IMG/VR virus record: IMGVR_UViG_3300032242_002454
Span: 140,626-204,625 of that record
Direction: 5' to 3' (one strand)
Length of the DNA: 64,000 nt
The position numbers were made by a program, and so were the translations under genes. Under the pieces are notes generated by a model. It had not been told where the DNA came from, did not search any database, and worked only from the letters and a program-made list of their open reading frames with translations. Shown here piece by piece: positions 8,198 through 47,927 of the stretch (the first letter of the stretch is position 1; each line of letters begins with the position of its first letter).

Positions 8198-8270
8198 GGC
8201 CCAGTAACCCAATGGCAGAGGTAGCGGACTTAAAATCCGTCAAGTATCAGTTCGAGTCTGATCTGGGCCA
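8198..8270 (+). tRNA. tRNA-Leu(UAA), short variable loop
   Basis: GGCCCAG/CTGGGCC-A; anticodon arm GCGGA-CTTAAAA-TCCGT; T arm ATCAG-TTCGAGT-CTGAT. Confidence 0.92.
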
Positions 8271-8304
8271 CTTTAATGTGGTGTAAAAAGTAGACAAAAT
8301 ATAT

Positions 8305-9757: not shown

Positions 9758-9759
9758 AA

Positions 9760-10086: not shown

Positions 10087-10087
10087 T

Positions 10088-11496: not shown

Positions 11497-11506
11497 GGAA
11501 ATTATA

Positions 11507-33041: not shown

Positions 33042-33464
33042 ATGAAAAACGTATATAATGAGGATAATCTAGTAGTTTGGCAAAAATGGTTTGATCCTTT
33101 TGGAGATGACGATACTCCAGAGCTAGGGCTTCATCGCACTAATGATGAAGAGTCCGATGATGTAGAAGGTAATTACGAAGAAGTTAGAGAGATACAAAAA
33201 CCTATGAGAGCTATTGCTACTCCTATGGGTTTGATACCTTATACAGAAAATACTGCATCTGGTAAGATTTTTAATTTTTGGGTAGGCCATACCAACTTCA
33301 ATGTTAATAATGATATTGTGGATATAATTGAAAATACTGATGGAGTAGAAACACTAGATGTTTTTACTAGATATAGGTTTCGTATTGCTATTGGCAAAGT
33401 ATTTGATGACGCTAAGGTTATGAAAGAAATTAATGATCAAGTATATTATCACCTAGGTAATTAA
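33042..33464 (+). CDS. conserved hypothetical phage protein
   Basis: WQKWFDP...FWVGHTNF...GVE...TRYRFRIAIGK. Confidence 0.8.
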   Translation: MKNVYNEDNLVVWQKWFDPFGDDDTPELGLHRTNDEESDDVEGNYEEVREIQKPMRAIATPMGLIPYTENTASGKIFNFWVGHTNFNVNNDIVDIIENTDGVETLDVFTRYRFRIAIGKVFDDAKVMKEINDQVYYHLGN

Positions 33465-33465
33465 T

Positions 33466-34143
33466 ATGGTAATAGCCTCTCCTAATGATAGTGAAATCAA
33501 TGATATCCATAATTTTAATATAGATATCAAAAATAGAGAGGTATATCTACACTCATATATAGATGGTGCAGATGAAGGTGGTGTTGATTATAGGTCAGCT
33601 GTTGTATTTGAAAAAAATATCAGATATCTAAATACACTATCTTCCGAACCCATATTAGTTCATATGCACTTGCCGGGAGGAGAATGGCAAGACTGCTTAG
33701 GAATATATGATACTATTAGATTTTCTAAATCTAGAATTGTTGTACTAGCTTATGCAAAAGTAGAGTCCTCAAGTAGCGTCATATTCCAAGCTGCACCACT
33801 AAGGATTCTAACTCCAAATGCTACTATGCTAATTCATTATGGTTCATTTAGTATGGATAGTGAACACTCTAAGGCTGCTGCTAGTTCTATCAAATGGAAT
33901 GAACAAGAGTGTGATAAGATGATTGAAATTTTTACCGACAGATGTATGGAAAGTGAACTAGCTAAACAAAAGAATTGGAAGAAAATGATGGCCAGAAAAC
34001 ACATCACTTCCCAATTGGCTAATAAGTGTGATTGGATTTTAACTTCTAACGAAGCAGTAGAGTATGGGTTTGCAGACGGTGTATTAGGTAGTAAGAAATA
34101 CCCCAGTATTGAACTACTTAAAACACACAGAATTAAAAAATGA
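33466..34143 (+). CDS. clpP: ClpP-like (S14) protease
   Basis: PGG, IYD, Ser in VESSSS, LIH, DWILTSNEAVEYGFAD. Confidence 0.85.
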   Translation: MVIASPNDSEINDIHNFNIDIKNREVYLHSYIDGADEGGVDYRSAVVFEKNIRYLNTLSSEPILVHMHLPGGEWQDCLGIYDTIRFSKSRIVVLAYAKVESSSSVIFQAAPLRILTPNATMLIHYGSFSMDSEHSKAAASSIKWNEQECDKMIEIFTDRCMESELAKQKNWKKMMARKHITSQLANKCDWILTSNEAVEYGFADGVLGSKKYPSIELLKTHRIKK

Positions 34144-34784
34144 TAATTGAATATTCAATATATGATATTTCTTTATCTGATGAAGAAATAAAAAAACTAT
34201 TAGCTGAAGCAGTTCAGTATAAACCAAATACAATTTCTGTATTATTACCACACATTAAAGTAGCTAAAAACATTTTAGCCAGTACTGGTATTAGTATTTC
34301 TACTCCAATAGATTATCCATTTGGTATCTTAGATACTAAAAATAGAGCAACTATTGTGGAGACAGCTATTAAATCTGGTGCTAACATCGTAAGCCTAGTT
34401 GCTCAACCATCTTTTTTTTGTAATCGTAAATACGATAAATTTAGAGAAGATATTAAAATCAATTTAGAAATATGCACCCAAGCCTCTGTAGAACTAAGAT
34501 ACATGTTAGAGTATAGAGTATTCACATATGAGTTATTATACAAAGTTTCTCAAATCTTGATGGATTTTGGAATAGATACCATATATCCTTCAACAGGACA
34601 TTCTTTAGATGATATTAATGACAATATCCTCGCTGCTGCTCTAATCAATAAAAAAGTGCCAATTAATATCATTTGTAATGGTAATGTTTGGAATATTGGC
34701 CACATTAATAATATCAAGAAGATCGATCTTTATGGTATTAAGGTCAACTCTATTAATGCTTTACAACTATTATCACAAAAATAA
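34140..34784 (+). CDS. DeoC-like TIM barrel lacking catalytic lysines
   Basis: IDYPFG, AIKSGA, IYPSTG in place of VKTSTG. Confidence 0.7.
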   Translation: MIIEYSIYDISLSDEEIKKLLAEAVQYKPNTISVLLPHIKVAKNILASTGISISTPIDYPFGILDTKNRATIVETAIKSGANIVSLVAQPSFFCNRKYDKFREDIKINLEICTQASVELRYMLEYRVFTYELLYKVSQILMDFGIDTIYPSTGHSLDDINDNILAAALINKKVPINIICNGNVWNIGHINNIKKIDLYGIKVNSINALQLLSQK

Positions 34785-34848
34785 TAGACCTTCTTTTAGT
34801 TTTAGGGTATAGTATAATTAGCATTTCCGTCAACCATGGGAGAATAAA

Positions 34849-35403
34849 ATGGCTATAGCAAAAACATCTGGTTCTGATTATACAGTACCTCCAAACGTAA
34901 AGTCCAGTGGCTCAGTTAATAACAGAGGCACAGTAGCTCGTGGTGGCTCAGTTGCTTCTGGTAAGCTCACAAACGTAGGCGTTAGTAGATATAACACAAC
35001 AGTATTTGCTTCAACAGTTCTTGATAATAGTTGGGCTGATAAAGCTCTAAGTGCTGGCACTTTTGCTTATAATGATAAGAATGGTGTTGCTATGAGAACC
35101 ACATCAGATATAGCTGGTGTTGCTAATACTTCATTGTTAACTGGAGCTAATGTTCCAGGTATCACTCGTAGTATCCACAAACTTGAAACCCTTAGAACTC
35201 GTAGATTCACAACAGCTATCAGAGCTAACAAGTACAACCTTTATACAGGAACATTCGATAATGGTTATCCTGTTGTAGCTGTTGATACATTAGCCACAGA
35301 TAATGCTGCAAATCCAACTCGTTCTGCTCCTGGTCAGCTTACTTATAAGCTTGGTGGCGTAGTACCAGTTATAAATAATGATTACAAGGCTAAGACTGGC
35401 TGA
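34849..35403 (+). CDS. probable virion structural protein
   Basis: S/T/G/A-rich, strong RBS, own promoter-like site and terminator. Confidence 0.65.
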   Translation: MAIAKTSGSDYTVPPNVKSSGSVNNRGTVARGGSVASGKLTNVGVSRYNTTVFASTVLDNSWADKALSAGTFAYNDKNGVAMRTTSDIAGVANTSLLTGANVPGITRSIHKLETLRTRRFTTAIRANKYNLYTGTFDNGYPVVAVDTLATDNAANPTRSAPGQLTYKLGGVVPVINNDYKAKTG

Positions 35404-35432: not shown

Positions 35433-35466
35433 AAAGCCAGCGATGCCTTGAGTGTCGTTGGCTTTT
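35433..35466 (+). terminator. intrinsic terminator
   Basis: AAGCCAGCGATGC-cttga-GTGTCGTTGGCTT-TT. Confidence 0.8.
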
Positions 35467-35491: not shown

Positions 35492-35809
35492 ATGAGCGAA
35501 ACAATTATTCATTTCTGGGAAAATATTGCTACAACCAGTATTGGCATTATTGTTACTATGGTAGGGTTTTGGGTGGCTATAGGACGAAATATGGCTACTA
35601 AATCAGAAGTTTTAGTAATGATTGAGACACAATCTCCATATGTACATGATCGTCAATTTATTATGGAAAGATTAAATACTAATAAAGAAACCCAAGCGGC
35701 TTTTGCTAATGCTTTACAAAGAAACACTGAAGTTATGACAGAATTAAAAATTCAAATAGCAACACTTGGTAAAACTCTAGAGGCTCTAGAAGACCGCATC
35801 GAAAAATAG
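35492..35809 (+). CDS. single-TM coiled-coil protein (holin/XhlA-like architecture)
   Basis: N-term TM then heptads. Confidence 0.65.
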   Translation: MSETIIHFWENIATTSIGIIVTMVGFWVAIGRNMATKSEVLVMIETQSPYVHDRQFIMERLNTNKETQAAFANALQRNTEVMTELKIQIATLGKTLEALEDRIEK

Positions 35810-35848
35810 TGTATATAATTACAACCCCTTATTCTGGAGAATCAAACA

Positions 35849-36058
35849 ATGGCTAGACCATATACAGACGTTCAAGCTGCAATCAGTGGTAATGTGGTTA
35901 AAAATGGCACAGCAGTCGTATCAACAACATTTACTGGTAAATATTCAACAAATAACAATTACGTCAAGAACACACCAGCAATCAGTACCATTTACAATAA
36001 ATATGGCAATAAGTTCTATAATGGTATATTTGTTAAAGTATTACCTAGCGGCACATGA
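35849..36058 (+). CDS. small hypothetical protein
   Basis: GGAG RBS; AGTGTA at 35808. Confidence 0.7.
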   Translation: MARPYTDVQAAISGNVVKNGTAVVSTTFTGKYSTNNNYVKNTPAISTIYNKYGNKFYNGIFVKVLPSGT

Positions 36059-36094
36059 TATTTTTTGGCAATTTAAAATGGGAGTTTAACATTC

Positions 36095-36439
36095 ATGGTC
36101 AAACCCGGCTATAGAACTAGCGAATTTTGGTTCACTATGGTCAGCTTTGTTTTTAGTGGACTATATTTAATGGGAATCATTGGAGAGAATAGTCAGAAAG
36201 AAGATTTGATTCAAGAAACAAGTAGAGGTCTAGAAGCTACAATACTTATTATAGGACAATTAACAGTTCTATTTAAGTATGTATCAAGTAGAGCTGAACT
36301 AAAGAAAACTTGGTGGAGCACAGCTAATCCAGAAGAAAGAAAAGTAGCAAATAGAGCTAATAGTAGAAAAAAGAAAAAACCCAAAAACACCACAGGAAAA
36401 ACCAATGCCAAATCCGATAGTCCTATTACAGATCAATAA
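36095..36439 (+). CDS. holin-like 2-TM protein
   Basis: KPGYRTSEFW, two TMs, basic C-tail. Confidence 0.65.
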   Translation: MVKPGYRTSEFWFTMVSFVFSGLYLMGIIGENSQKEDLIQETSRGLEATILIIGQLTVLFKYVSSRAELKKTWWSTANPEERKVANRANSRKKKKPKNTTGKTNAKSDSPITDQ

Positions 36440-36821
36440 CATCGTTGACTCTGCTAAAGCTATGCTTAAACAAGCAGAATCAGTAGCAGTTCCTCAAGCA
36501 TGGAATTTATTACAGTTAGCAATAGCAGATATAGTCCAACAAATTCAATTAACTCATCCAGAACTAAAAGGATCTAATAAAAAAGAAATAGCTATGAATG
36601 CCGTTTCTAGTTTTTATGATCAGGTTTTTTTAGTAGTAGAATTTCCCTTTCTACCACACTTGCTACAACCTATTATACAAAAGTACGTTAAACAGCTGTT
36701 AATGATTTTAGTTGGCGCTTCTATAGATGCTATGGTTACTACCTTTAAAAATACTGGTGTTTTCAGTACTCCAACAGTTGATAATACAGTCGATAATACC
36801 CCTAAAGTTTCAGATAAATGA
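36405..36821 (+). CDS. hypothetical helical protein
   Basis: LKGSNKKEIA motif. Confidence 0.7.
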   Translation: MPNPIVLLQINNIVDSAKAMLKQAESVAVPQAWNLLQLAIADIVQQIQLTHPELKGSNKKEIAMNAVSSFYDQVFLVVEFPFLPHLLQPIIQKYVKQLLMILVGASIDAMVTTFKNTGVFSTPTVDNTVDNTPKVSDK

Positions 36822-36836
36822 GAAAGAGAGATTCCA

Positions 36837-37226
36837 ATGAATTTCACAGAAAGTTTCCAAGAGTTTAGTAGTCGTTTGAGCACAATGGATTTGGCTCTTT
36901 ATGCTGGTGCTGGTCTTGTACTATGGGTTTTATTTAAGGATAAGTTGAGTCCCGTACAAACATTCTTGGGTGGTCTATTAGCTAAAATGAAAGGCTCCAC
37001 TCCTTCTTCTGTTGTACCAATTGTTGTACCATCAGTTGATGCTGTTGTTGTTCCAAAGTTAGCAGCTAATCAACCAGATGATACTTTTTTTAAGCTAGTT
37101 GTATCATGGAAGCAAACCAGAGATTTGGCTGTTCAAAGCGGTTGCGGCGAAGCAGTTAAGGTTGCTGACCAAATGTTTCCTTTCCTAAGTCCCAATGTTT
37201 GCAAAAAAGAGGATAAAGTATCATGA
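36837..37226 (+). CDS. single-TM membrane protein
   Basis: TM LALYAGAGLVLWVLF. Confidence 0.75.
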   Translation: MNFTESFQEFSSRLSTMDLALYAGAGLVLWVLFKDKLSPVQTFLGGLLAKMKGSTPSSVVPIVVPSVDAVVVPKLAANQPDDTFFKLVVSWKQTRDLAVQSGCGEAVKVADQMFPFLSPNVCKKEDKVS

Positions 37227-37714
37227 GCATGGATAAAAAAGTATTATTAGCACTAGGTGGTTTACTCATTTTAGTAGGTCTACTTAAGCCAGAGTTTTCT
37301 GATATGTTTAAGCCTAGACCAACTGTAGTAGATGTTCTTGAATTATCAGTACCAACAGATGAAGCTGTAAAAAAAGAAGCTGATGATGTTGTAATAGTTC
37401 TAAAAGAAGCTGGTATCAAGTCAGAAGCTAGGAAGCTAAGAGATTTATATATTGATTTAGCAAAGCTAGTTGAACTTGACGGTGAAGACGAAGTAATTAA
37501 AAGTACTGAAGAAATTCGTCAAGCTAATAGTCTAGCTGGTATTATGCTCAGATTGGATATGAAAGGTAAATATCCAAATCTAGCTAAAGAAGCAAAAGAA
37601 GTAGTAGTTGCTTCTATTGGTGATGATCAAATTCTTTTATCAAAAGAGCTAAGAGTTAAAGCTGTAGAAGGTCTTAATGCTTTAGCTTGGGCTTGCAATG
37701 AAGGGTCAAAATAA
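37223..37714 (+). CDS. membrane-anchored protein
   Basis: N-terminal signal anchor. Confidence 0.75.
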   Translation: MSMDKKVLLALGGLLILVGLLKPEFSDMFKPRPTVVDVLELSVPTDEAVKKEADDVVIVLKEAGIKSEARKLRDLYIDLAKLVELDGEDEVIKSTEEIRQANSLAGIMLRLDMKGKYPNLAKEAKEVVVASIGDDQILLSKELRVKAVEGLNALAWACNEGSK

Positions 37715-38640
37715 TGCCACGTTATTCTCCAAAAGAGCTTTACGATAACTATCGTCAAGGATTTAGTGGTTGCATATGGGAGCAACACGTATACGACCAT
37801 TTTATGGAGAATGCAAAATATCCATTGTTTGGTGATGCTAGTAAAAAAATTAAAAATTCTGGTAAAGGGAAACTTTCAACACCGTATAAGAGTGTGTTAA
37901 GGTTTGAGAAGAATCCTTATAATGAAAGACAAACTGTCGGAGATTGTGTCAGTCATGGAACACGAAATGCTTGTGATGTTACTAGAGCGGTAGAAATAGA
38001 TGTAAATCACGAAAGAGAAGATTGGGTAACAAAAGGTGCAACGGAAGCTATTTATGGTGCTAGGGGTTTTTCTGGTGAAGGCATGAGTTGTGCTAGAGCC
38101 GCTGAATTTGTTAGTAAGATTGGTGGTATAGTTCTTAGAAAGAATTATCCCGGCATTGCTGACTTTAGTAAATACAATGGCAATCTAGGTGCTGGCTGGG
38201 GAGGTCGAGGACTTCCAGATAAAGTATTAGACTTAGCCAATGATCATCAGATCAAAACTGCTTCATTAATTAGAACAGTAGAAGAGGCTCGTGATGCTCT
38301 ATCTAATGGCTATGGTATAGCAGTATGTTCTAATTATGGTTTTAGTAATACAAGAGATAAAAGGGGATTTGCTAAACAATCTGGTAGCTGGGGGCATTGT
38401 ATGGCTTGGATAGCATGTGATGATACTGGTAGTGAGCCAGCCTTTTTAGTCCAAAATAGCTGGGGAAAGTGGAATGATGGTGGACATCCCGAATGGGGTC
38501 CAATTCCAGATGGTTCATTTTTAATTCATGTTGATGTAGCTGCTGGTATGCTTGCTATGAATGGCTCATATACATTTAGCAGTTTTGACGGTTTTCCTCT
38601 CCAAAAGCTACCAAGCTACGGGTTTGAAGACTATCTCTAA
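37714..38640 (+). CDS. papain-like (C1A) cysteine protease
   Basis: Q..GDC, GHCM, QNSWG catalytic motifs. Confidence 0.9.
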   Translation: MPRYSPKELYDNYRQGFSGCIWEQHVYDHFMENAKYPLFGDASKKIKNSGKGKLSTPYKSVLRFEKNPYNERQTVGDCVSHGTRNACDVTRAVEIDVNHEREDWVTKGATEAIYGARGFSGEGMSCARAAEFVSKIGGIVLRKNYPGIADFSKYNGNLGAGWGGRGLPDKVLDLANDHQIKTASLIRTVEEARDALSNGYGIAVCSNYGFSNTRDKRGFAKQSGSWGHCMAWIACDDTGSEPAFLVQNSWGKWNDGGHPEWGPIPDGSFLIHVDVAAGMLAMNGSYTFSSFDGFPLQKLPSYGFEDYL

Positions 38641-38718
38641 AATTCGCAATTAGCTATTTTAAACCATCATCTCTATTAGGTGTATATATTTATATATCTA
38701 AATTCCTAGGAATATTTT

Positions 38719-38946
38719 ATGAACCTAAGAGAAAGATTAGAACTCCGCGCTGTCATTAACATGATCATTGGCATGATTGAAACTTTGGCAAAACTATTTA
38801 CCAAAGCTCAAAAAAAGTTTGGACCAAAACCTAAAATTGATAATCCAGACTCTCCAGTGAAACCCAATAGGCCACGACCCTTGAAAAGAGTTGTGGATAC
38901 TATTGATAATATTATACCTCTTCCATGGAGAGATAAAAATGAATAA
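38719..38946 (+). CDS. small hypothetical protein
   Basis: GGTGTA at 38679; Pro/Arg-rich. Confidence 0.65.
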   Translation: MNLRERLELRAVINMIIGMIETLAKLFTKAQKKFGPKPKIDNPDSPVKPNRPRPLKRVVDTIDNIIPLPWRDKNE

Positions 38947-39295
38947 ATTATTCGTTGGTTTATTTTGCGTTAGTTTGTTATTTACTCAGTCTCATTACTA
39001 TGGCTCAACAACGGCCCCGGTGACTCTTGCTGGAGGCATTATTAAAGCCAAGCATGTACAGGAAGTATCACAAAAGTATAAAAGAAAAGATTGTCCCGTT
39101 TGCAAGGGTAAGGGTTGGTATATGAGTGGTGATGGTATTCTTAAAATTGATTGCACATACTGTGAAGCAGATAAAGGATCGATTTCTGTAGGTCCAATTC
39201 AATCATTTAATCCAAAAGCCCCAACTCCAAAAGTATATTCAACATCACCAAATTGTCCTGATGGCAGTTGTCCTCTTAAATCCGTCAAAAAATAA
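38939..39295 (+). CDS. exported protein with DnaJ-type CxxCxGxG finger
   Basis: Signal-like N-term, CPVCKGKG...GDG...CTYC, CPDGSCP. Confidence 0.75.
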   Translation: MNKLFVGLFCVSLLFTQSHYYGSTTAPVTLAGGIIKAKHVQEVSQKYKRKDCPVCKGKGWYMSGDGILKIDCTYCEADKGSISVGPIQSFNPKAPTPKVYSTSPNCPDGSCPLKSVKK

Positions 39296-39313
39296 TCAAG
39301 GTGGTTGAATCAT

Positions 39314-41545
39314 ATGTCTGATCCAAATACACCACCACCATTTAAGATAGTAGATGATGATTTAATTTATGTTATTACTGGATACAATAAAATCAATTGT
39401 TTGCCAGACTCTAGAGAATCATCAATAGCTAATCTCAGAAAATATATCATAGATATGATTGGTGTTTCCGGAGTAGGCTTTTCCAGAGAAGGACCAGCAA
39501 CAGTATTCTCTACTGCACAAGAAGATAATTTAATAGATATCAATTATTCTAGTTCCTATCCATATACTCAGAAAATAGCAACTACTGGATTAAATAGTAA
39601 AACAGAAAATTTAATAGTAAAAGACTATGATACTATTTGGCCATATAGTGGAATACTCTATAATACTGGATTAAATGCTGTTGTTGGAAATAATGTAGAA
39701 ATACAATTTTCCACAGGAACACCGGCAGCAAATAAGTATGGTGGGGTTGGAGGAAAATATTTTAGTGGAATTATCTCTACAACAGGACTTAATTCTCGTA
39801 CAGAGAATTTAATTGTTAGAGATTTTGAAACTTCCTGGCCTTATAGTGGTATTATCTACAATACTGGATTGAATGCCAGAATTGGAAATAATATGGAGAT
39901 TCAATTCTCAACATCAACTCCGGCTGCTAATAAATACGGTGGTGTTGGAGGAAAATATACTAGCGGTATTATTTCTACTACTGGACTTAATTCTCGCACA
40001 GAAAATCTAATAGTAAGAGATTTTGAAACCGATTGGCCCTATAGCGGTGTTATCTATAATACTGGTTTGAATGCTGTTGTTGGAAATAATATGGAAATCC
40101 AATTTTCAACATCCACACCAGCAGCTAACAAATATGGTAGAGTTGGAGGTAAATATACTAGTGGCATAGTTTCAACTACAGGATTAAATGCAAGAAGTGA
40201 AAATTTAATAGTAAGAGATTTTGAAAGAGCTTGGCCTTATAGTGGAGTAATTTACAATACTGGTTTGAATGCTAGAGTTGGTAATAATATGGAAATTCAA
40301 TTTTCCACAGATACTCCCGCAGATGATAAATATGGTGGAGTTGGAGGTAAATATACCAGCGGTATTATTTCCACTACTGGATTAAATTCCAGAACGGAAA
40401 ACCTAATAGTCCGAGACTTTGAAACTGATTGGCCATATAGTGGTGTGATATATAATACAGGATTAAATGCTAGAGCTGGTAATTTAATACAAATTCAATA
40501 TCAATCATCTTCTCCGGCTGGTGGTATTTATGGTGGAACCGAAGGAAAATATAAATCAGGTATTATTTCTACAACCGGTTTAAATATGATAGATGGATCT
40601 AATATAGGTTATACTATAGGAACTTCTTTTCCTCATAAATATACTATTTTTACAGTTGACCAAGCTAGAACATCTACTGACCCAATAACATTTATTAATA
40701 ATAGCGCTAATACTATCAGTACTACATCTGGATATATAGATCCAGCAATGGTTATAGATTATAGTCCATTATATACTTCAAAACCTGGTGAAAATATTAA
40801 TTTGATTTCTTCTTTTAAATTTTTGACAGATGATAGTGGAGATAATGATTGGTATGTCTCATTTACTATGCCATTAGCTTCTACAATGAAAATAAAAGAA
40901 TTGATCCCAGTATCAGGAGTATCATATTCAACTACTGCTAACTCATGTTATATGACAACAAGAAGCGTATATAATCCAGAAACTGATGATTATATTAATG
41001 TTCCTTATTGTCAAACAACATTTAAAACTATTACAGACCCTAATCCTTCGGACTTAAGTGGTTGGACACCAGTATCAGCAGCTATAACAGCAAAATCATT
41101 CTATTTTTCTATTCTATGTAGTGGAGGATCATCGTCTGAATTTGCAAAAGGAACATTAACATTTACTAATCCTAGTGGTGCGGCTTGTTATACTGCAAAT
41201 GGTGGAGAGACATATAATTTTGGCGCAAGTTTTATTAAAGAAGCATATAGACCAAGTGGTTATGAGCTTGATCGTTTAAATCCTATGGAGATAGAATTTT
41301 TCCAACAATTATCAATTAATAGCAACACAATAAATAACTACAATGCTACCTCTCCTAAATTTAATATTTCTAATTTTGGATATACTAGAACATACAGAAA
41401 ACTTATAGGATATGGTGATTTATGTATTGGAGATGCTTGTACCTATAATGCAACACCCGTATATAGGTATTATACAGCAACTGCATATGGCCCAGCTTCA
41501 TTCACAATAGGTAAAAGATCCTTTAGAACAACAAATGTATCATAA
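39314..41545 (+). CDS. 66-aa tandem-repeat protein (likely virion appendage)
   Basis: Five 66-aa repeats plus unique C-term domain. Confidence 0.8.
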   Translation: MSDPNTPPPFKIVDDDLIYVITGYNKINCLPDSRESSIANLRKYIIDMIGVSGVGFSREGPATVFSTAQEDNLIDINYSSSYPYTQKIATTGLNSKTENLIVKDYDTIWPYSGILYNTGLNAVVGNNVEIQFSTGTPAANKYGGVGGKYFSGIISTTGLNSRTENLIVRDFETSWPYSGIIYNTGLNARIGNNMEIQFSTSTPAANKYGGVGGKYTSGIISTTGLNSRTENLIVRDFETDWPYSGVIYNTGLNAVVGNNMEIQFSTSTPAANKYGRVGGKYTSGIVSTTGLNARSENLIVRDFERAWPYSGVIYNTGLNARVGNNMEIQFSTDTPADDKYGGVGGKYTSGIISTTGLNSRTENLIVRDFETDWPYSGVIYNTGLNARAGNLIQIQYQSSSPAGGIYGGTEGKYKSGIISTTGLNMIDGSNIGYTIGTSFPHKYTIFTVDQARTSTDPITFINNSANTISTTSGYIDPAMVIDYSPLYTSKPGENINLISSFKFLTDDSGDNDWYVSFTMPLASTMKIKELIPVSGVSYSTTANSCYMTTRSVYNPETDDYINVPYCQTTFKTITDPNPSDLSGWTPVSAAITAKSFYFSILCSGGSSSEFAKGTLTFTNPSGAACYTANGGETYNFGASFIKEAYRPSGYELDRLNPMEIEFFQQLSINSNTINNYNATSPKFNISNFGYTRTYRKLIGYGDLCIGDACTYNATPVYRYYTATAYGPASFTIGKRSFRTTNVS
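39581..40585 (+). repeat. 198-bp coding tandem repeat x5 plus start of 6th
   Basis: TTGLN units start at 39581, 39779, 39977, 40175, 40373, 40571. Confidence 0.92.
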
Positions 41546-41589
41546 GGTGTATCAAATTAAGATTCAATCATTTTAATAAGGTGATAATT

Positions 41590-41994
41590 ATGACAACTCC
41601 AGATAATGCAAAACTCAAAGCTATAGCTATTAAAATTTTAGAAAAATCTAATGTTAAAAAAGACGAAGTATATGGATTTGCTATTGTTACTATCCTAATG
41701 ATCATTAGTATCATTCTCACCTGTGTAAGAATTTTACAAGAATGCAATAAAAATAAACTATCAGCTAGTTCTACAACAGAAGATAAATATGCTATGTATG
41801 GTGAGCAGTTACATACTTTTAGTGAGCGTAGAGGCTGGTTTACAAAAATGAGAATTAAGAAAATTTTACGAAGAGAAATGAATAGAGAAGATTATGAAAA
41901 ATATTCATTAAGTATTTTGAATGCTTTGTTAGAGACAGGAGAAGTTCTCACGGATGATGAGATTCAAACCCTAGTGGAGAATGCCAATGTTTAA
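41590..41994 (+). CDS. single-TM membrane protein
   Basis: TM FAIVTILMIISIILTCV; GGTGTA at 41546. Confidence 0.75.
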   Translation: MTTPDNAKLKAIAIKILEKSNVKKDEVYGFAIVTILMIISIILTCVRILQECNKNKLSASSTTEDKYAMYGEQLHTFSERRGWFTKMRIKKILRREMNREDYEKYSLSILNALLETGEVLTDDEIQTLVENANV

Positions 41995-42238
41995 TATTTT
42001 AGTATGGTGTGTTTATGGTCTATTTGTGGGGTCTATTGCCAAAAGTTTAGTTCCCGGCGAAGAAAATTTTGGCTTTGTTAAAACCGTTGCTCTTGGAGTA
42101 GCTGGTTCTTATTTAGGTGGAGCTATAATGTATTTAATGGGACAATATAGTAGCATGAGTCCAGCGGGTATATTTATGGGTGTTGCCGGTGGCACTCTTG
42201 CTCTTGTGCTTTATAATAAGGTTAATCAAATTAAGTGA
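41987..42238 (+). CDS. GlsB/YeaQ/YmgE (transglycosylase-associated) membrane protein
   Basis: W..GL.VG.IAK.LVPG...TVALGVAGS..GG. Confidence 0.88.
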   Translation: MFNILVWCVYGLFVGSIAKSLVPGEENFGFVKTVALGVAGSYLGGAIMYLMGQYSSMSPAGIFMGVAGGTLALVLYNKVNQIK

Positions 42239-42273
42239 TTTTGATCTTATTACTTTAAAGTGACTGTGATACT

Positions 42274-43854
42274 ATGCTTACTCCTAGAGAATTATACAAC
42301 CAATATACCTCTCAGATATATAATGATATTCATGGAAAAGGAACGCCATATGATCTAGTAAGATTAGTATATTTTCTGAAACATCTTAAAACACCTTGTT
42401 ACAGAAGAACTCTCAATTCTATTGTAACTAATCCAAATGGGACAACATCTGAACAAAAAGATACTTGGAATACTATTACTGATACTGGATTAGGAAAGCT
42501 TGGTATACCATTTAAATTTTTAACCAGAATAGATGCCGAAGCTTTTGAAGAAATTCAACCATCTATGGATAGTGGAACAGCTTTTGCTGTTAGAAATTCT
42601 TGTGATCTTACTAGAGCTTGTGATACAGAAATCAAAAAAGCTTATGATTTATGGGAAGCTAGGATGGCAACAGAGTATTTACAGCGTTTTGCTGGTAATT
42701 CTTTACCTGATTGTTTATTAATGCTGGGGCCTGATTTAGTATCAGAAGATACTGCTCTTAATAGATCAACAGGTTGTGGAGACCTATCCTGCATAACTAA
42801 TACTAAGTTTGAAGACGAAGTAGTGGGTGCTATTGGTGCTCCTCATTCGTGTATGCGAAATAAAACTGGCAAAAGATATTGTGGTAGCTGTGGTACTTGT
42901 GATATAGACCCAGAAGAAGATCCAGTAGGATTTGCTAATAATCCTTGCTGTACCTCACCAACTTGCGAAGATAAAATTAATAAATGTTGTCATGGACCAT
43001 TAACTTTAAGGTTTGATTTTACATATTTGCAGAGATCTGATGATAGCTTATTTGGTGGTACAGTTAATGCTGGATGGGTGGATTCAATATTTAAACATAT
43101 TGGTATTATTAAAAGAAAAAGTTATGGTGGTTATGCTAATTTCATAGATAGCAGTGGATCTAATTTTTATGCTAGTCCTGATAATGTATTTTTAAGATAT
43201 ATGCAATCTCAAAATGGATATGATTATACTAAAGATACGTCAACTTCTGGAACTATTGACAGAATCAAAACTATTTGTGGATTATTTGGTGATACAGAGA
43301 CAATTGTTAAGAATATTAAAGATTTATTATTTAATGGATATGGGGTAGTACTATTTACTAATGTCGGTTTTCCTGATATTAGAGATTCTACTGGATTAAG
43401 TTATCCAGATCGTAATTGGTATCATACCTACTCTATCATAGCTTACGATGATAGAAAAACTGAATTTAAAGAATGTGTATTTTTATTAGCAAACAGTTGG
43501 GGAGAATGGAATTCTGGAGGTAATCCTACTTGGGGACCAATACCTCCCGGAAGTTTTTTGGTAACTGAAAGTCATTTAAAATGTATGTTAGATTTCAATA
43601 GAGCCCCAGACTATAAGGGTTGTAAATCTCAATTTTGTCCACCTCCATGTCCTACACCAGAAGATTTTGCTGCTTGCACAGATGAAGGGACATGTGTTCC
43701 TTTTGAGTGTACCGATAAACAAAAGGCTTTTGGTTTAGCTTTTGCTCTTTCTATGAAAGAAGGATTTCTTCTTCAAAAGTTAGATTATGATCAATTTACT
43801 AAGCCTATTTTACCAGTGCTCGACGGATCTATAGTTTACTTTAATCCAAATTAA
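42274..43854 (+). CDS. papain-like paralog lacking catalytic Cys, Cys-rich inserts
   Basis: Colinear with 37714 gene; QPSMDSGTAF replaces QTVGDCVSH. Confidence 0.8.
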   Translation: MLTPRELYNQYTSQIYNDIHGKGTPYDLVRLVYFLKHLKTPCYRRTLNSIVTNPNGTTSEQKDTWNTITDTGLGKLGIPFKFLTRIDAEAFEEIQPSMDSGTAFAVRNSCDLTRACDTEIKKAYDLWEARMATEYLQRFAGNSLPDCLLMLGPDLVSEDTALNRSTGCGDLSCITNTKFEDEVVGAIGAPHSCMRNKTGKRYCGSCGTCDIDPEEDPVGFANNPCCTSPTCEDKINKCCHGPLTLRFDFTYLQRSDDSLFGGTVNAGWVDSIFKHIGIIKRKSYGGYANFIDSSGSNFYASPDNVFLRYMQSQNGYDYTKDTSTSGTIDRIKTICGLFGDTETIVKNIKDLLFNGYGVVLFTNVGFPDIRDSTGLSYPDRNWYHTYSIIAYDDRKTEFKECVFLLANSWGEWNSGGNPTWGPIPPGSFLVTESHLKCMLDFNRAPDYKGCKSQFCPPPCPTPEDFAACTDEGTCVPFECTDKQKAFGLAFALSMKEGFLLQKLDYDQFTKPILPVLDGSIVYFNPN

Positions 43855-43865
43855 TAAAGGCTATT

Positions 43866-46800
43866 ATGTCTCCATCAACATGGTGCGATAAAGATCATTG
43901 GTATTCTGATCAAAATTTAACAGAAAAAAATAATAGTATACCTAAAAATGAAATAGATGACGTTGAAATAGAAGGAACTGGATATACTTATTCTATCATA
44001 GATAGTACATGTTTTGGAAGAATGCCATTTTTAAAATGTCATAATCTTAATGTTGTGATAGCAACAGGTGTTATTATAGGTGAAGGAGGTTTACAATTTT
44101 CTTGTGCTAATTTAGCAGCAGACACAGTTTTCCTAGGTCCACAGAATATTACATGTCAACATTGGAATATTAATGAGTTTTGCAATTGGGATATTTCTAC
44201 ATTAATTACTTATCCTGGTCATAAATCTACTTTTTTAAATCAAATTATTTTTAGTAATCTGAATTCAGGATCTTTAGATCATACTTATATCAATGAATGC
44301 TATGTCAAATCTAATATATTAAATTTAGACCATTGTTATTTTCATGGAACCGATGATATAACAACATACATATCTTGTTCTAGTGGATTATTAATAAATT
44401 CACAAGCAAATAATAATAAAATATATTGGGAGGGTAATTTTTGGATTTCAGGTACCACGATTGATGACCAGTCAGGATTCAATAATGAATCTAAATTAAG
44501 AGGTAGTGGTCAGGGAACTTTTGATTTTACTCGATCTACTAATTTTGCGGCACTAGATGGTGATATTAAATTTGGGCATAACTCTAAGAATTATGGTAAT
44601 CTGTATGGAAATCCTATTTTTTCTGGTGGTTCTCGTAACTATGGAATAATAGTTGGTGATTGTATTTTTAGTGGAGAAAATAGTGCTAATTACGGAACTA
44701 TTTCTGGAACTAGCATTTTTGTTAGCGGAGCTTTAAATAGTGGAATTATTACTCAACCTTGTATTTTTTATTCTGGTACAAATAATTTTGGAACTTTAAA
44801 AGATTTTTCTCTTTTTTATTATGCTTATAATGGTGGATCATTAAATAATGGTTCTAAATTTATTTGTTCGGAAAATATGAGTATTGGCTTGATTCCTAGT
44901 GGTGATGTTATTTTTATAAGCGGAATAAATCGGGGTAACCTAGCTACATCTGGTAAGATTTCTTTTAGTAGTGGATGTCAAAATTTTGGTAATCTAACGT
45001 CACCTTCTGCCGAAATTAGTTTTGATTTTTATTCAAATAACATGGATCAATCAGAGATTAAAACTAGTGGTTTTGTTACATTCGGTACAGGGTGTGCTAA
45101 CTTAGGCTTAATAAAAAATGGTATTTTTAATAGTTCATCTCAAAACTATGGAACTATTTCAAATACTGGTATTTTTAAAGATTTTTCAATTAATACCGGA
45201 ATAATAACAACTGGAATTTTCTATAATTTATCTGTGAACGGAGGAAAGATTATAGATTTGGGTCAGTTTTATGGTTCATCTACGAATACCTATTATGATA
45301 TTACAGTTAACACAACAGGCATCTTCAATGATTCCTCCATAAATAATGGATTTTTAAAAAATGGATCTTTCTATAATAACAGTATAAATAATTCAGGATC
45401 AACTGCAAGAATTAAAACTTCTGGTATGTTTTATAATTCTTCAAAAAATTATGGATCTGGTTCAAATATTTTCTTTTATGATAATAGTCGTAATGGAGTT
45501 AGTGGTATTGTAGAGAGTGGTAGGTTTTTATCTCATTCTATTAACTCTAGTGGGGCTATAATTCAAAGTTTGGCTTATTTTAGTGGTAACAGTATCAATT
45601 GTGGAAATATTTTTCTTAGTGGTAATTGTGATATAGTTTTTAATGAAAATTCTATTAATAGCGGTATTATTAATAAAGATTTGGTTGTTCTTTTTTCTGG
45701 TTACTCTTCCAACAATAATTATGTAAAAAATGCTGAATTTTATAATTCTGGACAAAACGCTGTTATGGGTACTGGATATAAATTGAGTTTTTTTAATGAA
45801 TCATTCAATAAAGGATATATTGATCCTACTGGATTATTTTATGATAAATCTATGAATTTAAATAATGGAATTATAATTAATGCTATTTTTTATGATAAGT
45901 CTAGTAATAGTAGTTCCATGAGACGACCTTTGGTATCCGGCTATGAGTTTTTAACATCTGGTAATCGTATATTAAAAATAACAGATACAGCAATAAATTT
46001 TGGAGAACTAAATAATGTTGATGTTAGTTTTTCTGGTGCTAGTATTAATCAAGGGACTATAACATGGAAATTCAATCCATTATTTATTTATACTTCATCA
46101 GGTATATTTAACACTGGCACCACTCCCTATAGTTTTGTTGCGACAGGAATATTTTTACAAAATTATAGTGGAGCAAGTATTCCTACAGTTAATTTTAATG
46201 AATATTCAACTAATCAAGCAAATATAGTTGGATACAGAGATGTTTTATTCAATGGTACTACCATAATAGATTATAGTGGGGGTGTTACAAACTACGGATC
46301 TATTTCGACATATCCTCCAGTGCCTAAGGATAGTTTTTGTGTTAGTTTTATAAATGGAACTAATTATGGGCCAATTCAAAATTTGTCTATTTTCTATAAG
46401 TCCATTAATTATGATGTTTTATTTATAGCTGAATTTGATCAAAGTATTAATTCTGGAACAATTATTGATTATGGGTCGTTTTATAAATCCATAAATTATG
46501 GTAATGTTAATTATGGATTTTTTCAATCAAAAAGTATTAATAGTGGAATTGTTAATATTGGTAATTTTCAACAATCATATAATTTTAATCGTATAAATAT
46601 TGGAGATTTTTATCAAGGTTCAATAAATACTCTTTCTGGAATTATTTCAAATTCAGGAAGCTTTTTTTCAAATAATCCTCCATCTATCAATTATAGTACA
46701 ATTATAACTCCTATAATATGTTTTTCTGGCGATTCAAAAAATATGGGAAGGGTAATGGAAGCATATTTTTCTGGTACAGCTATTAATGATGTATCTGGGA

Positions 46801-47873
46801 ATATACTAGGACATGGAATTTTTACAGATAAATCTACTAACAATAGTAATCAAGTGTCTTTATTAGACTTTTATGATTCCTCTGCTAATCAAGCTAACTC
46901 AACAGGAATTTTTCAATTTCATGATCGGTCTCAAAATAGTGGAATTTTAACAGGTCAAACAATATTTTTGAATGATAGTAAAATCTATGGGGAATGTTTT
47001 GGAAAAATATTTCTATATGATTCATCAATCAATAGTGGACTATTGTCAGGGACAATACTTCTCCAAGGATCAGGATCTAATCCTCCTTCTAATCGTTCTT
47101 TAATAATAGGAGATAGTGATACTGTATTAGTATTAGCTGAAAACAATGGACAAATAGTAGGAAATAGTATATTTACTTCTGGTATTAATAAGGGATTTAT
47201 TGAAAAAGGATCATTTTTTAATAGTACTAATGATAGTAATGGAATAGTTTCTGGTGAAGGTAAATTTTATGATAGCGCAAATCTTGGAAATGTTAAAACA
47301 ACCGCTCTTTTTTATGGAAGTGGTTATAATCTAGGTAGTGGGTCTGTGGGTATATTTAATAATCAATCAACTAATAGTGGTACAATACTTGATGGGACTT
47401 TCTACAATAACTCAAAAAATGCTTCAACGGTATATTTCAGTAGATTTTATAACTCTTCTTACAACGCCAGCAATGCACAGAGCACACCCTTTGCATTATT
47501 CTATGACACATCTATTAATTATGGATCTATTGATAGTGCATATTTTGATAATCAATCTACTAATGATTTTGTTGGTATAGTAGTGGACTCAGGAACTTTT
47601 ACTAATGGAGCAATAAATAGTGGTCAAATAAAAGGAATTGGTGTTTTTAATAATAGCAGTATAAATAAAGGTTCCATAGATGGTTATGCTATATTCAATG
47701 GTTCAAACTGTATAGAAGGCACTCTTAAATCTGATGCTTTATTTACAAATTATAGTTTTTGTTCAAATACTACAATATATGGATCAGCTATTTTTAATAG
47801 TGGATCATGTTATAATAAAAATACTACCATTATAAAAGGATCTATCACAAAACCACCAGACTGCAATCCATAG
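43866..47873 (+). CDS. large beta-solenoid repeat protein (possible fibre/surface protein)
   Basis: Many ~15-16 aa FxxxSxNxGxI repeats. Confidence 0.8.
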   Translation: MSPSTWCDKDHWYSDQNLTEKNNSIPKNEIDDVEIEGTGYTYSIIDSTCFGRMPFLKCHNLNVVIATGVIIGEGGLQFSCANLAADTVFLGPQNITCQHWNINEFCNWDISTLITYPGHKSTFLNQIIFSNLNSGSLDHTYINECYVKSNILNLDHCYFHGTDDITTYISCSSGLLINSQANNNKIYWEGNFWISGTTIDDQSGFNNESKLRGSGQGTFDFTRSTNFAALDGDIKFGHNSKNYGNLYGNPIFSGGSRNYGIIVGDCIFSGENSANYGTISGTSIFVSGALNSGIITQPCIFYSGTNNFGTLKDFSLFYYAYNGGSLNNGSKFICSENMSIGLIPSGDVIFISGINRGNLATSGKISFSSGCQNFGNLTSPSAEISFDFYSNNMDQSEIKTSGFVTFGTGCANLGLIKNGIFNSSSQNYGTISNTGIFKDFSINTGIITTGIFYNLSVNGGKIIDLGQFYGSSTNTYYDITVNTTGIFNDSSINNGFLKNGSFYNNSINNSGSTARIKTSGMFYNSSKNYGSGSNIFFYDNSRNGVSGIVESGRFLSHSINSSGAIIQSLAYFSGNSINCGNIFLSGNCDIVFNENSINSGIINKDLVVLFSGYSSNNNYVKNAEFYNSGQNAVMGTGYKLSFFNESFNKGYIDPTGLFYDKSMNLNNGIIINAIFYDKSSNSSSMRRPLVSGYEFLTSGNRILKITDTAINFGELNNVDVSFSGASINQGTITWKFNPLFIYTSSGIFNTGTTPYSFVATGIFLQNYSGASIPTVNFNEYSTNQANIVGYRDVLFNGTTIIDYSGGVTNYGSISTYPPVPKDSFCVSFINGTNYGPIQNLSIFYKSINYDVLFIAEFDQSINSGTIIDYGSFYKSINYGNVNYGFFQSKSINSGIVNIGNFQQSYNFNRINIGDFYQGSINTLSGIISNSGSFFSNNPPSINYSTIITPIICFSGDSKNMGRVMEAYFSGTAINDVSGNILGHGIFTDKSTNNSNQVSLLDFYDSSANQANSTGIFQFHDRSQNSGILTGQTIFLNDSKIYGECFGKIFLYDSSINSGLLSGTILLQGSGSNPPSNRSLIIGDSDTVLVLAENNGQIVGNSIFTSGINKGFIEKGSFFNSTNDSNGIVSGEGKFYDSANLGNVKTTALFYGSGYNLGSGSVGIFNNQSTNSGTILDGTFYNNSKNASTVYFSRFYNSSYNASNAQSTPFALFYDTSINYGSIDSAYFDNQSTNDFVGIVVDSGTFTNGAINSGQIKGIGVFNNSSINKGSIDGYAIFNGSNCIEGTLKSDALFTNYSFCSNTTIYGSAIFNSGSCYNKNTTIIKGSITKPPDCNP

Positions 47874-47927
47874 TTTCTTTAAAAAATAATGGACTTGTCT
47901 TACTCTCTCTAGAAAGTATAATGTTCT

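Follow-up and report, generated by a model that had tools for sequence, protein, structure and literature searches.

Holin-endolysin-spanin lysis cassettes of Gram-negative phages, including lambda S/R/Rz/Rz1 and the T1 gp11 u-spanin, are the described systems closest to a conserved block of small membrane and exported proteins in an uncultured 205-kb freshwater phage. Like these cassettes, the block is a cluster of small membrane proteins around one hydrolase that lacks a signal peptide, and it contains a protein with a TM and a coiled-coil-like part. Relatives have lipoprotein and u-spanin-like neighbours and sit directly upstream of the terminase, and no other lysin was found in the genome with the 12 Pfam families searched. 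However, the hydrolase is a predicted papain-fold C1-like peptidase rather than a glycosidase, transglycosylase, amidase, or known endopeptidase family, and none of the membrane proteins belongs to a known holin or spanin family. There are also more partners (at least eight genes), including an inferred dedicated anchor subunit and a thiol-redox or zinc-ribbon protein.

SAR and signal-peptide endolysins include P1 Lyz, phage 21 R21, and Mu gp22 with its releasin gp25 (PMC9239132). In relatives of the present phage, the enzyme is likewise predicted to be exported and held at the membrane by an N-terminal anchor, and an accessory membrane protein accompanies it. A Cys-dependent enzyme in the periplasm with a nearby thiol-redox protein recalls the thiol-disulfide activation of P1 Lyz, although release from the membrane and redox control would here be matters of analogy. 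In the phage studied, the anchor is a separate polypeptide, the enzyme has no export signal, and the fold and chemistry differ.

Papain family C1 peptidases (xylellain 3OIS, cathepsins B/K/L, and caricain) share the two-lobed fold and the Gln/Cys/His/Asn-Ser-Trp catalytic residues, and an N-terminal helical segment of about 70 residues aligns with the pro-regions of the zymogen structures. Identity is only 11-16%, and the phage-specific family has its own anchor partner and hosts inteins. CHAP, NlpC/P60, and Amidase_5 catalytic domains of endolysins are Cys-His enzymes of papain-like topology that phages use to cut peptidoglycan peptides or amide bonds. There is no sequence match to them (PF05257 and PF00877 are absent), and the phage enzyme is a full two-lobed C1-type domain of about 240 residues with an oxyanion Gln rather than the compact CHAP/NlpC core. 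The multi-subunit endolysin PlyC is built from catalytic (PlyCA) and binding (PlyCB) subunits encoded by separate adjacent genes. It has no homology to the phage proteins, whose partner is a membrane anchor and not a wall-binding ring, and whose interaction is inferred from gene fusion and not from structure.

Architecture and conservation of the module

Positions refer to the window, a 64,000-nucleotide stretch of the 204,625-bp genome (IMG/VR record IMGVR_UViG_3300032242_002454, positions 140,626 to 204,625). The module spans 35492-42238, and its features and flanking elements are as follows.

35433-35465 (+): terminator-like hairpin (14-bp stem) between the 184-aa gene 34849-35403 and the first module gene; the likely 5' boundary of the transcription unit.
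35492-35809 (+): 105-aa protein with a TM at about residues 11-35 and a highly conserved coiled-coil-like C-terminal part; i-spanin-like in architecture, no family match, only a weak hit to phrog_1009, of unknown function; present in 40/43 loci at median 83% identity.
35849-36058 (+): 69-aa conserved small protein without a TM, in 35/43 loci; a hot spot for large insertions lies just downstream (seen in loci L006, L016, and L021).
36095-36439 (+): 114-aa protein with a strong TM (11-29), a second weaker hydrophobic helix, and a Lys-rich C-terminal tail, conserved in 58 sequences; holin-like by architecture only; in 43/43 loci, with 540 homologues, all unannotated and without Pfam domains.
36405-36821 (+): 138-aa protein with a C-terminal hydrophobic region, in 43/43 loci; conserved with the peptidase in a distant 56%-GC phage (locus L097, 8996-9316; hhalign 94%).
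36837-37226 (+): 129-aa N-terminally anchored protein (TM at about 16-35) with a conserved C-terminal domain that holds two conserved Cys; in 43/43 loci.
37223-37714 (+): 163-aa N-terminal membrane anchor (TM 5-25) followed by a predicted five-helix bundle (AF2 pLDDT 86); the inferred partner of the peptidase.
37714-38640 (+): 308-aa predicted papain-fold (clan CA, C1-like) cysteine peptidase with Gln73, Cys78, His228, and Asn248-Ser-Trp, and no signal peptide; the most conserved gene of the block (median 85% identity in 43/43 loci).
38719-38946 (+): 75-aa protein with a hydrophobic helix and a Pro-rich tail ending in PLPWR, overlapping the next gene by 8 nt; in 23/43 loci.
38939-39295 (+): 118-aa predicted exported protein with a hydrophobic N-terminus, a DnaJ-type CxxCxGxG...CxxC zinc ribbon (conserved CPVCKGKG...CxYC), and a C-terminal C..G.C; weak anti-TRAP/DnaJ-type zinc-finger hit; in 43/43 loci. 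Its homologue in locus L093 is a lipoprotein (LVAGC; hhalign 93%).
39305-41545 (+): 746-aa protein with five 66-aa tandem repeats and no Pfam hit, in 3/43 loci; a hypervariable insert, not part of the conserved module.
41590-41994 (+): 134-aa single-pass membrane protein (TM at about 26-52) with a conserved LQECNKNK motif after the TM, overlapping the next gene by 14 nt; in 43/43 loci, with a weak hhalign match (72%) to the gene just upstream of the peptidase in locus L090.
41981-42238 (+): 85-aa membrane protein of the GlsB/YeaQ/YmgE (Transgly_assoc) family with three hydrophobic helices, in 43/43 loci; NCBIfam PRK10457 matches over the full length (E 6.5e-10, residues 5-82), while Pfam PF04226 (E 2e-4, 21.9 bits) falls below its 25.3 cut-off.
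42274-43854 (+): 526-aa paralogue of the peptidase (BLASTP E 6e-24) with the nucleophile Cys replaced by Ser and 24 Cys in Cys-rich inserts and a Cys-rich tail; accessory, with orthologues in 11 loci.
43866-47873 (+): 1335-aa N/S/G/I-rich repeat protein of undetermined function; hypervariable, co-occurring with the Ser-variant paralogue.

The observation made in the first-pass annotation, a run of small membrane proteins with an exported zinc-finger protein and a papain-like protease coupled to a membrane-anchored protein, is confirmed. All of the listed ORFs exist on the + strand, and the TM assignments come from hydropathy on the single sequences and on alignments of 22-62 homologues. The TAATG overlap at 37712-37716, where the peptidase ATG overlaps the stop of the anchor gene, was read directly and is kept in at least 70 of 79 related loci. 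Membrane proteins are enriched in the block (6 of 12 genes against 27 of 248 elsewhere in the genome; Fisher p = 0.0014), and the block is syntenic in 43 of 43 full-length related loci. Lake metatranscriptome contigs from relatives cover the module genes but not the adjacent ClpP-like and deoC-like genes.

Three points of that annotation require correction. The assignment of the 308-aa protein to C1A is too specific, as the protein is recognised as papain-like only by profile and by fold. The second "papain protease" is a Ser-variant present in only about a quarter of relatives that travels with a hypervariable giant repeat protein, so the module is not built around proteases in the plural. 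The absence of a peptidoglycan hydrolase, which had been stated for the window, holds for the whole genome for the 12 Pfam families searched.

A papain-like peptidase family and its membrane partner

The 308-aa peptidase founds a large unannotated phage family comprising 1430 clusters at 50% identity, and the family is absent from 50,697 GenBank phage records. Gln73, Cys78, and His228 are invariant in 45 diverse homologues, Ser249 and Trp250 are conserved in at least 90% of them, and Asn248 is invariant in an 8-sequence alignment. The family profile hits caricain and papain at E about 1e-6. The AF2 model has a pLDDT of 94 and a pTM of 0.93, and Foldseek matches it to xylellain (the best PDB match) and procathepsins (E 4e-10 to 1e-7) and to C1A clusters in AFDB (E 2.5e-22). 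The protein has no Pfam or PHROG hit at E <= 0.01, and only 11 of 45 homologues hit PF00112 (best E 3.6e-4). It falls below the PF00112 threshold and is best treated as a new family within the clan, with peptide-bond hydrolysis inferred from its active site.

Homologues of the anchor protein form the N-terminal part of single-chain anchor-peptidase fusions. Fifteen of 150 peptidase cluster representatives begin with a TM anchor that has a basic N-terminus and an acidic stretch after the TM, which is the topology of a type-II membrane protein. In 8 of them the N-terminal 150-160 residues match the profile of 37223-37714 at 84-96% hhalign probability, and BLASTP matches the anchor to homologue P0177 at E 3.9e-6. 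Homologues of the anchor also lie directly upstream of the peptidase gene in L093 (97%) and L097 (96%). A complex prediction for anchor plus peptidase gave no answer (score 0.01). Homologue P0125 and the copy in locus L094 carry RRxFL Tat signals, whereas the enzyme in the window has no hydrophobic N-terminus and therefore lacks the signal-anchor of a SAR endolysin. Inteins sit at all three catalytic motifs in homologues, which argues for an essential enzyme.

The module recurs in distant phages. Anchor, peptidase, and zinc-ribbon lipoprotein lie together in the GC-rich L093, next to a tail-fibre-like gene. The 36405-like, anchor, and Tat-peptidase genes lie together in L097 with a CGPC thioredoxin lipoprotein, and the module ends one small gene upstream of TerL and portal. 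In L094 the Tat-peptidase is followed by a 127-aa protein with a lipobox-like N-terminus and a C-terminal TM (u-spanin architecture), then TerL and portal. Several homologies between distant modules proposed by eye failed hhalign, including an L093 look-alike of the TM-plus-coiled-coil protein 35492-35809.

No small protein of the block matches a holin, antiholin, or spanin family in Pfam, PHROGs, or NCBIfam. The window also has no lipobox lipoprotein of the o-spanin type, as 38939-39295 has GLFC (Phe at position -1) and 38719-38946 has no Cys. Relatives do have lipoproteins (LVAGC in L093, ILSGC in L097). The peptidase itself has no muralytic hit in the same three databases, and there are only distant fold matches to phage proteins in which papain-fold domains are fused to peptidoglycan-binding or muramidase annotations, a precedent for a wall-directed role. 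A conventional endolysin elsewhere in the genome was sought with 12 peptidoglycan-hydrolase Pfam families, and none gave a six-frame hit in the complete genome (DTR, CheckV 100%). Six of these families were also absent from complete relatives, five of them in all five relatives and Amidase_2 in two. Divergent muralytic enzymes could nevertheless escape Pfam.

Interpretation as a candidate lysis module

The earlier interpretation, a lysis or envelope-remodelling module acting on a protein-rich envelope, is partly supported. The genes form a real, conserved multi-gene module centred on the peptidase, and the fusions, Tat signals, and lipoprotein, thioredoxin lipoprotein, and u-spanin-like neighbours near the terminase indicate that the peptidase is directed at the cell envelope. 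Nothing shows that the target is a protein-rich envelope. Beyond tentative organism assignments for some accessions, the Planctomycetota host hint rests only on one ESM-Atlas row, in which the nearest bacterial cluster is commonest in Planctomycetota.

The best explanation, held tentatively and at somewhat less than even confidence, is that the block is a non-canonical lysis (envelope-disruption) cassette of an uncultured jumbo phage. Its enzyme would be a two-part cysteine peptidase consisting of a membrane-anchored periplasmic helical subunit (37223-37714) and a papain-fold catalytic subunit (37714-38640), made by coupled translation. As the two parts are one N-in/C-out polypeptide in some relatives, or the catalytic part has a Tat signal, the catalytic domain would work on the periplasmic side. 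The signal-less copy in the window is inferred to accumulate in the cytoplasm and to reach the periplasm when one of the small membrane proteins permeabilises the inner membrane, where it would dock on its anchor. The 2-TM, Lys-tailed protein 36095-36439 is the best holin candidate. The exported CxxCxGxG protein (38939-39295) is inferred to control or protect the catalytic thiol in the oxidising periplasm, and in other lineages a CGPC thioredoxin lipoprotein sits in this position. The peptidase is then inferred to cut peptide bonds that hold the envelope together, which could be peptidoglycan stem peptides or cross-links, or proteins tethering wall and outer membrane. The TM-plus-coiled-coil protein (35492-35809) and the other small membrane proteins are inferred to complete outer-layer disruption or to time it.

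The analysis itself establishes the fold (as a predicted model) and catalytic residues, the conservation of the module, the fusion, the export signals in relatives, and the absence of the 12 muralytic families from the genome. Lysis as the role, the substrate, peptidoglycan degradation, hole formation, passage of the catalytic subunit across the membrane, and the parts played by each small protein are inferences. No C1-family enzyme is known to cleave peptidoglycan, and the nearest structures are true proteases. In addition, the block lies in the jumbo phage among metabolic and early-type genes (ClpP-like, deoC-like, rIIA, ligase, and RNR), not next to packaging genes.

A less likely alternative is non-lytic envelope remodelling, in which the exported peptidase complex trims host periplasmic or outer-membrane proteins for receptor destruction, superinfection exclusion, or dismantling of envelope machinery, and unrecognised genes perform lysis. 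The evidence for a periplasmic location serves this reading equally, as do the protease-like structural relatives and the non-structural neighbourhood in the jumbo phage, and the hypervariable large proteins inserted within the block suggest host-interaction functions. However, exclusion and receptor-masking genes are usually accessory and variable, while this peptidase is present in 43/43 relatives, is the most conserved gene of the block, and hosts inteins at its catalytic motifs, which fits an essential function. The pre-terminase position with spanin-like neighbours in smaller phages and the failure to find another lysin with the 12 Pfam families searched also count against it.

More doubtful still is the specific proposal of a lysin that digests a proteinaceous cell wall or S-layer of an unusual host such as Planctomycetota, which would explain the lack of any muralytic enzyme. 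The absence of the family from GenBank phage records suggests that the hosts are probably lineages without cultured phages, the Planctomycetota-rich bacterial cluster (rank 70) is the nearest by language-model features, no muralytic family was found among the 12 searched, not even a tail-associated one, and the enzyme has a true protease-type active site. Conversely, the only GTDB hit is an unclassified "bacterium" MAG that looks like binned phage contigs, and the family occurs in phages of 34% to 56% GC, so the hosts are diverse. Lipoproteins, Tat signals, and a u-spanin-like protein point to an ordinary diderm envelope with a periplasm, and Planctomycetes have peptidoglycan.

A processing protease for phage-encoded giant repeat proteins or virion proteins, with the membrane proteins as unrelated neighbours, is the least likely reading: although the Ser-variant paralogue always travels with the 1335-aa repeat protein, large variable proteins are inserted at three sites in the block, and L093 places the module beside a tail-fibre-like gene, the module exists without any giant protein in L093, L094, L097, and many jumbo relatives, Tat signals and TM-anchor fusions put the catalytic domain outside the cytoplasm, where virions are not assembled, and the gene fusion ties the peptidase to the membrane anchor, so the neighbours are not unrelated.

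The block is the best candidate for this phage's host-lysis machinery, because the complete genome shows no recognisable cell-wall hydrolase among the 12 families searched. A broader and unlikely possibility is that it represents a previously unrecognised, widespread class of phage lysis system, in which a periplasm-acting papain-type cysteine protease, made of a membrane-anchor subunit and a catalytic subunit with a dedicated thiol-redox helper, opens the envelope by proteolysis. Such a system would cut wall-tethering or wall proteins, or peptide cross-links, and would fully replace muralytic endolysins. It would be used by large clades of uncultured freshwater phages whose hosts have no cultured phages.

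Genome setting and composition of the block

The block lies in the last 64 kb of a 204,625-bp single-contig virus record that has a 123-bp terminal overlap and a GC content of 34.5%. IMG/VR classes the record as having direct terminal repeats, and CheckV gives 100% completeness. The record is an uncultured freshwater jumbo phage, and the DNA runs that hold it are lake metagenomes. Its structural module lies outside the window on the minus strand at 17.6-99 kb and holds TerL and ORFs of up to 5022 aa. Between positions 17642 and 75090 of the record, giant ORFs encode proteins of 5022, 4023, 2679, 1868 and 1443 aa, and two 520-560-aa proteins have tail-fibre-type N-termini. TerL is only about 24% identical to any cultured phage, and rIIA and TerL are only 24-37% identical to proteins of cultured phages.

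All long ORFs of the window lie on the + strand. Recognisable genes include rIIA, an ATP-dependent DNA ligase, an IMPDH/GMP-reductase-like gene, a GT4 glycosyltransferase, a ClpP-like protease, a deoC-like aldolase, a class II ribonucleotide reductase, and two tRNAs. The tRNA-Ile(TAT) and tRNA-Leu(TAA) genes, at 1127-1200 and 8198-8271, decode A/T-ending codons, which suggests a host with a higher GC content than the phage. A sigma70 region-4-like protein lies a few genes upstream of the block at 31709-32290 and also at 3636-4160 of L090, a distant relative, and may be a phage-encoded late sigma or anti-sigma-type regulator. The features discussed here are as follows, in window coordinates; a single number is the start of a gene.

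33466-34143 (+), ClpP-like protease
34140-34784 (+), deoC-like aldolase
34849 (+), 184-aa conserved protein with a homologue in L090
35433-35465, terminator-like hairpin, the strongest of the region
35492 (+), small protein with a TM helix
36095 (+), small protein with a TM helix
36405-36821 (+), small protein with a homologue in the distant locus L097
36837 (+), small protein with a TM helix
37223-37714 (+), membrane-anchored protein
37714-38640 (+), 308-aa predicted C1-like cysteine peptidase
38719 (+), small gene overlapping the next
38939-39295 (+), protein with a hydrophobic N-terminus, a conserved CPVCKGKG...CxYC DnaJ-type zinc ribbon, and a C-terminal C..G.C
39305-41545 (+), 746-aa tandem-repeat protein
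41590 (+), small protein with a TM helix, overlapping the next gene
41981 (+), GlsB/YeaQ/YmgE protein with three predicted helices
42274-43854 (+), second peptidase-like gene
43866-47873 (+), 1335-aa N/S/G/I-rich repeat protein

The observation made in the first-pass annotation is confirmed, as every ORF that it listed in this cluster of small membrane proteins is present. Hydropathy on single sequences and on alignments of 22-62 homologues supports single N-terminal or central TM helices in the proteins at 35492, 36095, 36837, 37223 and 41590, and three helices in the protein at 41981. Membrane proteins are enriched in the block (Fisher p = 0.0014). The TAATG overlap between 37223-37714 and 37714-38640 is real and is kept in at least 70 of 79 related loci, and the gene pairs 38719/38939 and 41590/41981 also overlap. 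A -1 slip at the A-run before TAATG was considered as a means of producing an anchor-peptidase fusion. The reading frames fit, but the base needed before AAA is an A in only about a quarter of the 79 loci; this mechanism was therefore rejected, and plain termination-reinitiation coupling is retained.

The block is strictly syntenic apart from its insertions. In 43 full-length 21-kb IMG/VR loci, the conserved order is 33042, ClpP-like, deoC-like, 34849, 35492, (35849), 36095, 36405, 36837, 37223, peptidase, (38719), 38939, 41590, 41981, 47928. Three insertion hot spots, at 36058-36095, 39295-41590 and 42238-47928, hold large hypervariable genes whose content differs between close relatives (loci L006, L016, L021 and L076). 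The 746-aa protein contains five near-identical 66-aa tandem repeats and is present in 3/43 loci; promoter-like hits recur within it every 396 nt (39637, 40033, 40429), which simply reflects the DNA repeat. The 1335-aa repeat protein is present in about 10/43 loci. ESM Atlas leads for 43866-47873 and for 37223-37714 scored below 0.9.

The second peptidase-like gene, 42274-43854, had been counted as a papain protease in the first-pass annotation, which built the cluster around proteases in the plural. It is a true paralogue of the peptidase (E 6e-24), but its nucleophile is Ser in 10 of 12 orthologues, and one orthologue has also lost His and Asn. It has 23-27 Cys and occurs only together with the 1335-aa repeat protein, with which it may form a fibre or adhesin plus helper pair. 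It is therefore an accessory and probably non-proteolytic derivative rather than a second core enzyme.

Two lake metatranscriptome libraries hold short contigs, 90-99% alike, over 34849, 35492/35849, 36095/36405, the 3′ end of 37223, the peptidase, 38719 and 38939, and none over the adjacent 33400-34800. This suggests transcription in nature, although DNA can be present in such libraries. The gene at 34849 is among the best-covered stretches and may encode an abundant protein.

The predicted C1-like peptidase family and its inteins

The 308-aa protein is a predicted papain-fold cysteine peptidase with no Pfam, PHROG, NCBIfam or PADLOC hit. It nevertheless has 1685 close homologues in a 90%-identity cluster database and 1430 cluster representatives at 50% identity, and the family is found on more than 590 IMG/VR contigs. 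In 45 diverse members, Q73, C78 and H228 are invariant, and S249 and W250 nearly so. A profile of the family hits caricain, papain and cathepsin K at E about 1e-6. The AF2 model has pLDDT 94 and matches xylellain and procathepsins in the PDB, C1A clusters in AFDB at 23-31% identity, and viral C1 peptidases. The ESM Atlas places the protein in Uroviricota clusters, and tblastn of three diverse family members against 50,697 GenBank phage records found nothing. It is therefore a new clan-CA, C1-like family that is specific to uncultured phages.

Longer homologues of 650-1200 aa (among representatives P0121-P0214) contain Hint/intein-splicing and LAGLIDADG domains. BLAST junctions place the inteins at three sites, each at a catalytic motif: GD|C78VSH, where the catalytic Cys is the +1 residue; GSWxH228|C229; and after NSWG. 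Some proteins carry two inteins, while the window copy has none. Inteins typically persist in the most constrained sites of indispensable proteins, which agrees with the peptidase being the most conserved gene of the block, at 85% median identity in 43/43 loci. Inteins at all three catalytic motifs of a peptidase are unusual in their own right. In L090, HNH-like and DUF4379 zinc-ribbon ORFs (6338-7066 and 9196-10170) flank the peptidase gene and are probably free-standing homing endonucleases, in line with the inteins seen elsewhere.

Fusions, export signals and gene context

The anchor protein and the peptidase are joined in some homologues. Fifteen of the 150 listed cluster representatives start with a TM helix, with basic residues before it and acidic or Pro-rich sequence after it, which indicates an N-in/C-out topology. 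In eight of them, the first 150-160 residues match the profile of 37223-37714 at 84-96% hhalign probability over almost its whole length, and blastp gives E 3.9e-6 for one representative, P0177. The anchor protein and the peptidase are thus two halves of one unit, split in the window at the TAATG. A Pfam search of the N-terminal extensions of the fused homologues found nothing. The predicted anchor subunit is a helical bundle with no significant PDB match and only two small uncharacterised AFDB clusters as relatives. Complex prediction of the peptidase with the anchor’s periplasmic part gave a score of only 0.01, which is not evidence either way. Other members carry predicted export signals: representative P0125 (53% identical) and the copy in locus L094 begin with RRxFL twin-arginine (Tat) signals.

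The context of the peptidase in distant phages also points to the envelope. L093, a GC-rich locus, has a small TM protein, an anchor homologue (hhalign 97%), the peptidase, and a homologue of 38939 that is a lipoprotein with an LVAGC lipobox (hhalign 93%), followed by two more small proteins, one with a TM plus coiled coil. L097, at 56% GC, has a homologue of 36405 (94%), a small TM protein, an anchor homologue (96%), the Tat-peptidase, and a thioredoxin-fold protein with WCGPC and an ILSGC lipobox (11088-11639). A small Pro-rich protein with a signal and a Cys follows, then one small gene, TerL and portal. A thioredoxin-fold protein with WCGPC also lies directly downstream of the peptidase gene in locus L098 (8372-8923) and of the fused peptidase on the P0177 contig, in independent lineages. 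L094 has an exported protein, the Tat-peptidase, and a basic 85-aa protein. Next comes a 127-aa protein (8578-8961) with a twin-arginine/lipobox-like N-terminus (KRRTF...IMAC) and a C-terminal TM, which is the architecture of a unimolecular spanin, and then TerL, portal, scaffold and major capsid protein. The position just upstream of the terminase is a classical place for lysis cassettes, as in lambda.

Some resemblances between distant modules were not upheld. Homologies proposed by eye for 36837 with L093_9252, 35492 with L093_11579, 37223 with L094_6525 and L090_7132, and 38719 with L097_11931 failed hhalign. The protein at 36405-36821 appears to resemble LL-H-type holins, but Pfam and NCBIfam give no hit. 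Searches for more distant IMG/VR contexts with P0125, another representative (P0204), and two alignments (A1 and A3) gave nothing new. A defence or anti-defence origin was rejected, as PADLOC gave only a weak coiled-coil hit, and a prohead protease role for the peptidase was rejected because relatives export it by a Tat signal or TM anchor.

No conventional lysin was found among the families tested. Six-frame HMM searches of the complete genome detected none of Phage_lysozyme, Amidase_2, SLT, Peptidase_M23, Glyco_hydro_19, NLPC_P60, CHAP, Glyco_hydro_108, Glyco_hydro_25, Hydrolase_2 and Amidase_3, and the twelfth family, Peptidase_M15_4, gave only a 12.7-bit noise hit. The control genomes gave hits as expected. 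These searches do not exclude a very divergent enzyme. Six of the twelve families were also absent from complete relatives, five of them tested in all five complete relatives and Amidase_2 in two.

The host was sought by several routes without assignment. Besides the negative search of GenBank phage records, a GTDB scan found only an unclassified 1.8-Mb MAG (bacterium WB4_3_0875) carrying three separate contigs with this peptidase family, and the bin may consist largely of phage contigs. The phage encodes no S21 and is not one of the bS21-encoding Bacteroidetes phages (PMC9723584). Support for a Planctomycetota host, hinted at in the first-pass annotation, rests only on one ESM Atlas row and on the presumed Planctomycete origin of D5SMP3, A0A142WVW7 and A3ZPK3.

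Interpretation as a putative lysis cassette

The most economical reading is a lysis cassette in which a cysteine peptidase replaces the muralytic endolysin. The distribution of export modes in the family mirrors that of endolysins: most members have no signal, a minority have an N-terminal anchor, and a few have Tat signals, just as canonical endolysins divide into cytoplasmic, SAR and signal-peptide forms. The recurrent CxxC partner, a zinc ribbon in the window and a CGPC thioredoxin lipoprotein elsewhere, fits an enzyme whose catalytic thiol must function in an oxidising compartment and recalls the thiol-disulfide activation of the P1 SAR endolysin. However, no small protein belongs to a known holin or spanin family, the window lacks a lipobox lipoprotein, and in the jumbo phage the block sits among non-structural genes. 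The catalytic residues, the modelled fold, the conserved gene order, the fusions, the export signals of relatives, and the absence of the tested muralytic families come directly from the analysis, whereas proteolytic activity, its substrate, redox control, and lysis itself are inferred.

This reading is tentative and falls short of an even chance, but it is preferred over its rivals. Non-lytic envelope remodelling is unlikely but comes next, followed by a lysin acting on the proteinaceous wall of an unusual host, which is more doubtful. A processing protease for phage proteins is the least likely. The interpretation offered in the first-pass annotation, a lysis or envelope-remodelling module acting on a protein-rich envelope, is partly supported.

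The finding is real and more than a chance cluster. It is a new C1-like phage peptidase family, predicted from sequence and fold, with a dedicated membrane anchor, and it is the core of a conserved envelope-directed module. The module is regarded as a variation on the lysis-cassette theme and is not assigned to any endolysin, holin or spanin family.

Lysis by tailed phages of diderm bacteria is taught as the combined action of a holin, a muralytic endolysin and a spanin. Here, a complete 205-kb genome and its complete relatives lack the muralytic families tested (12 in the genome itself, six of them also in relatives) and carry instead a strictly conserved cysteine peptidase, of a family that hosts inteins, wired to the membrane. 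The anchor-catalytic gene fission and fusion, together with the redox partner, give a directly testable mechanism. If the enzyme does lyse cells, it is a new lysin chemistry and a new annotation key for thousands of ‘hypothetical’ genes. Because the family is large, has no Pfam or PHROG annotation, and is missing from the cultured phage records searched, a whole sector of environmental phages may exit cells by an undescribed route.
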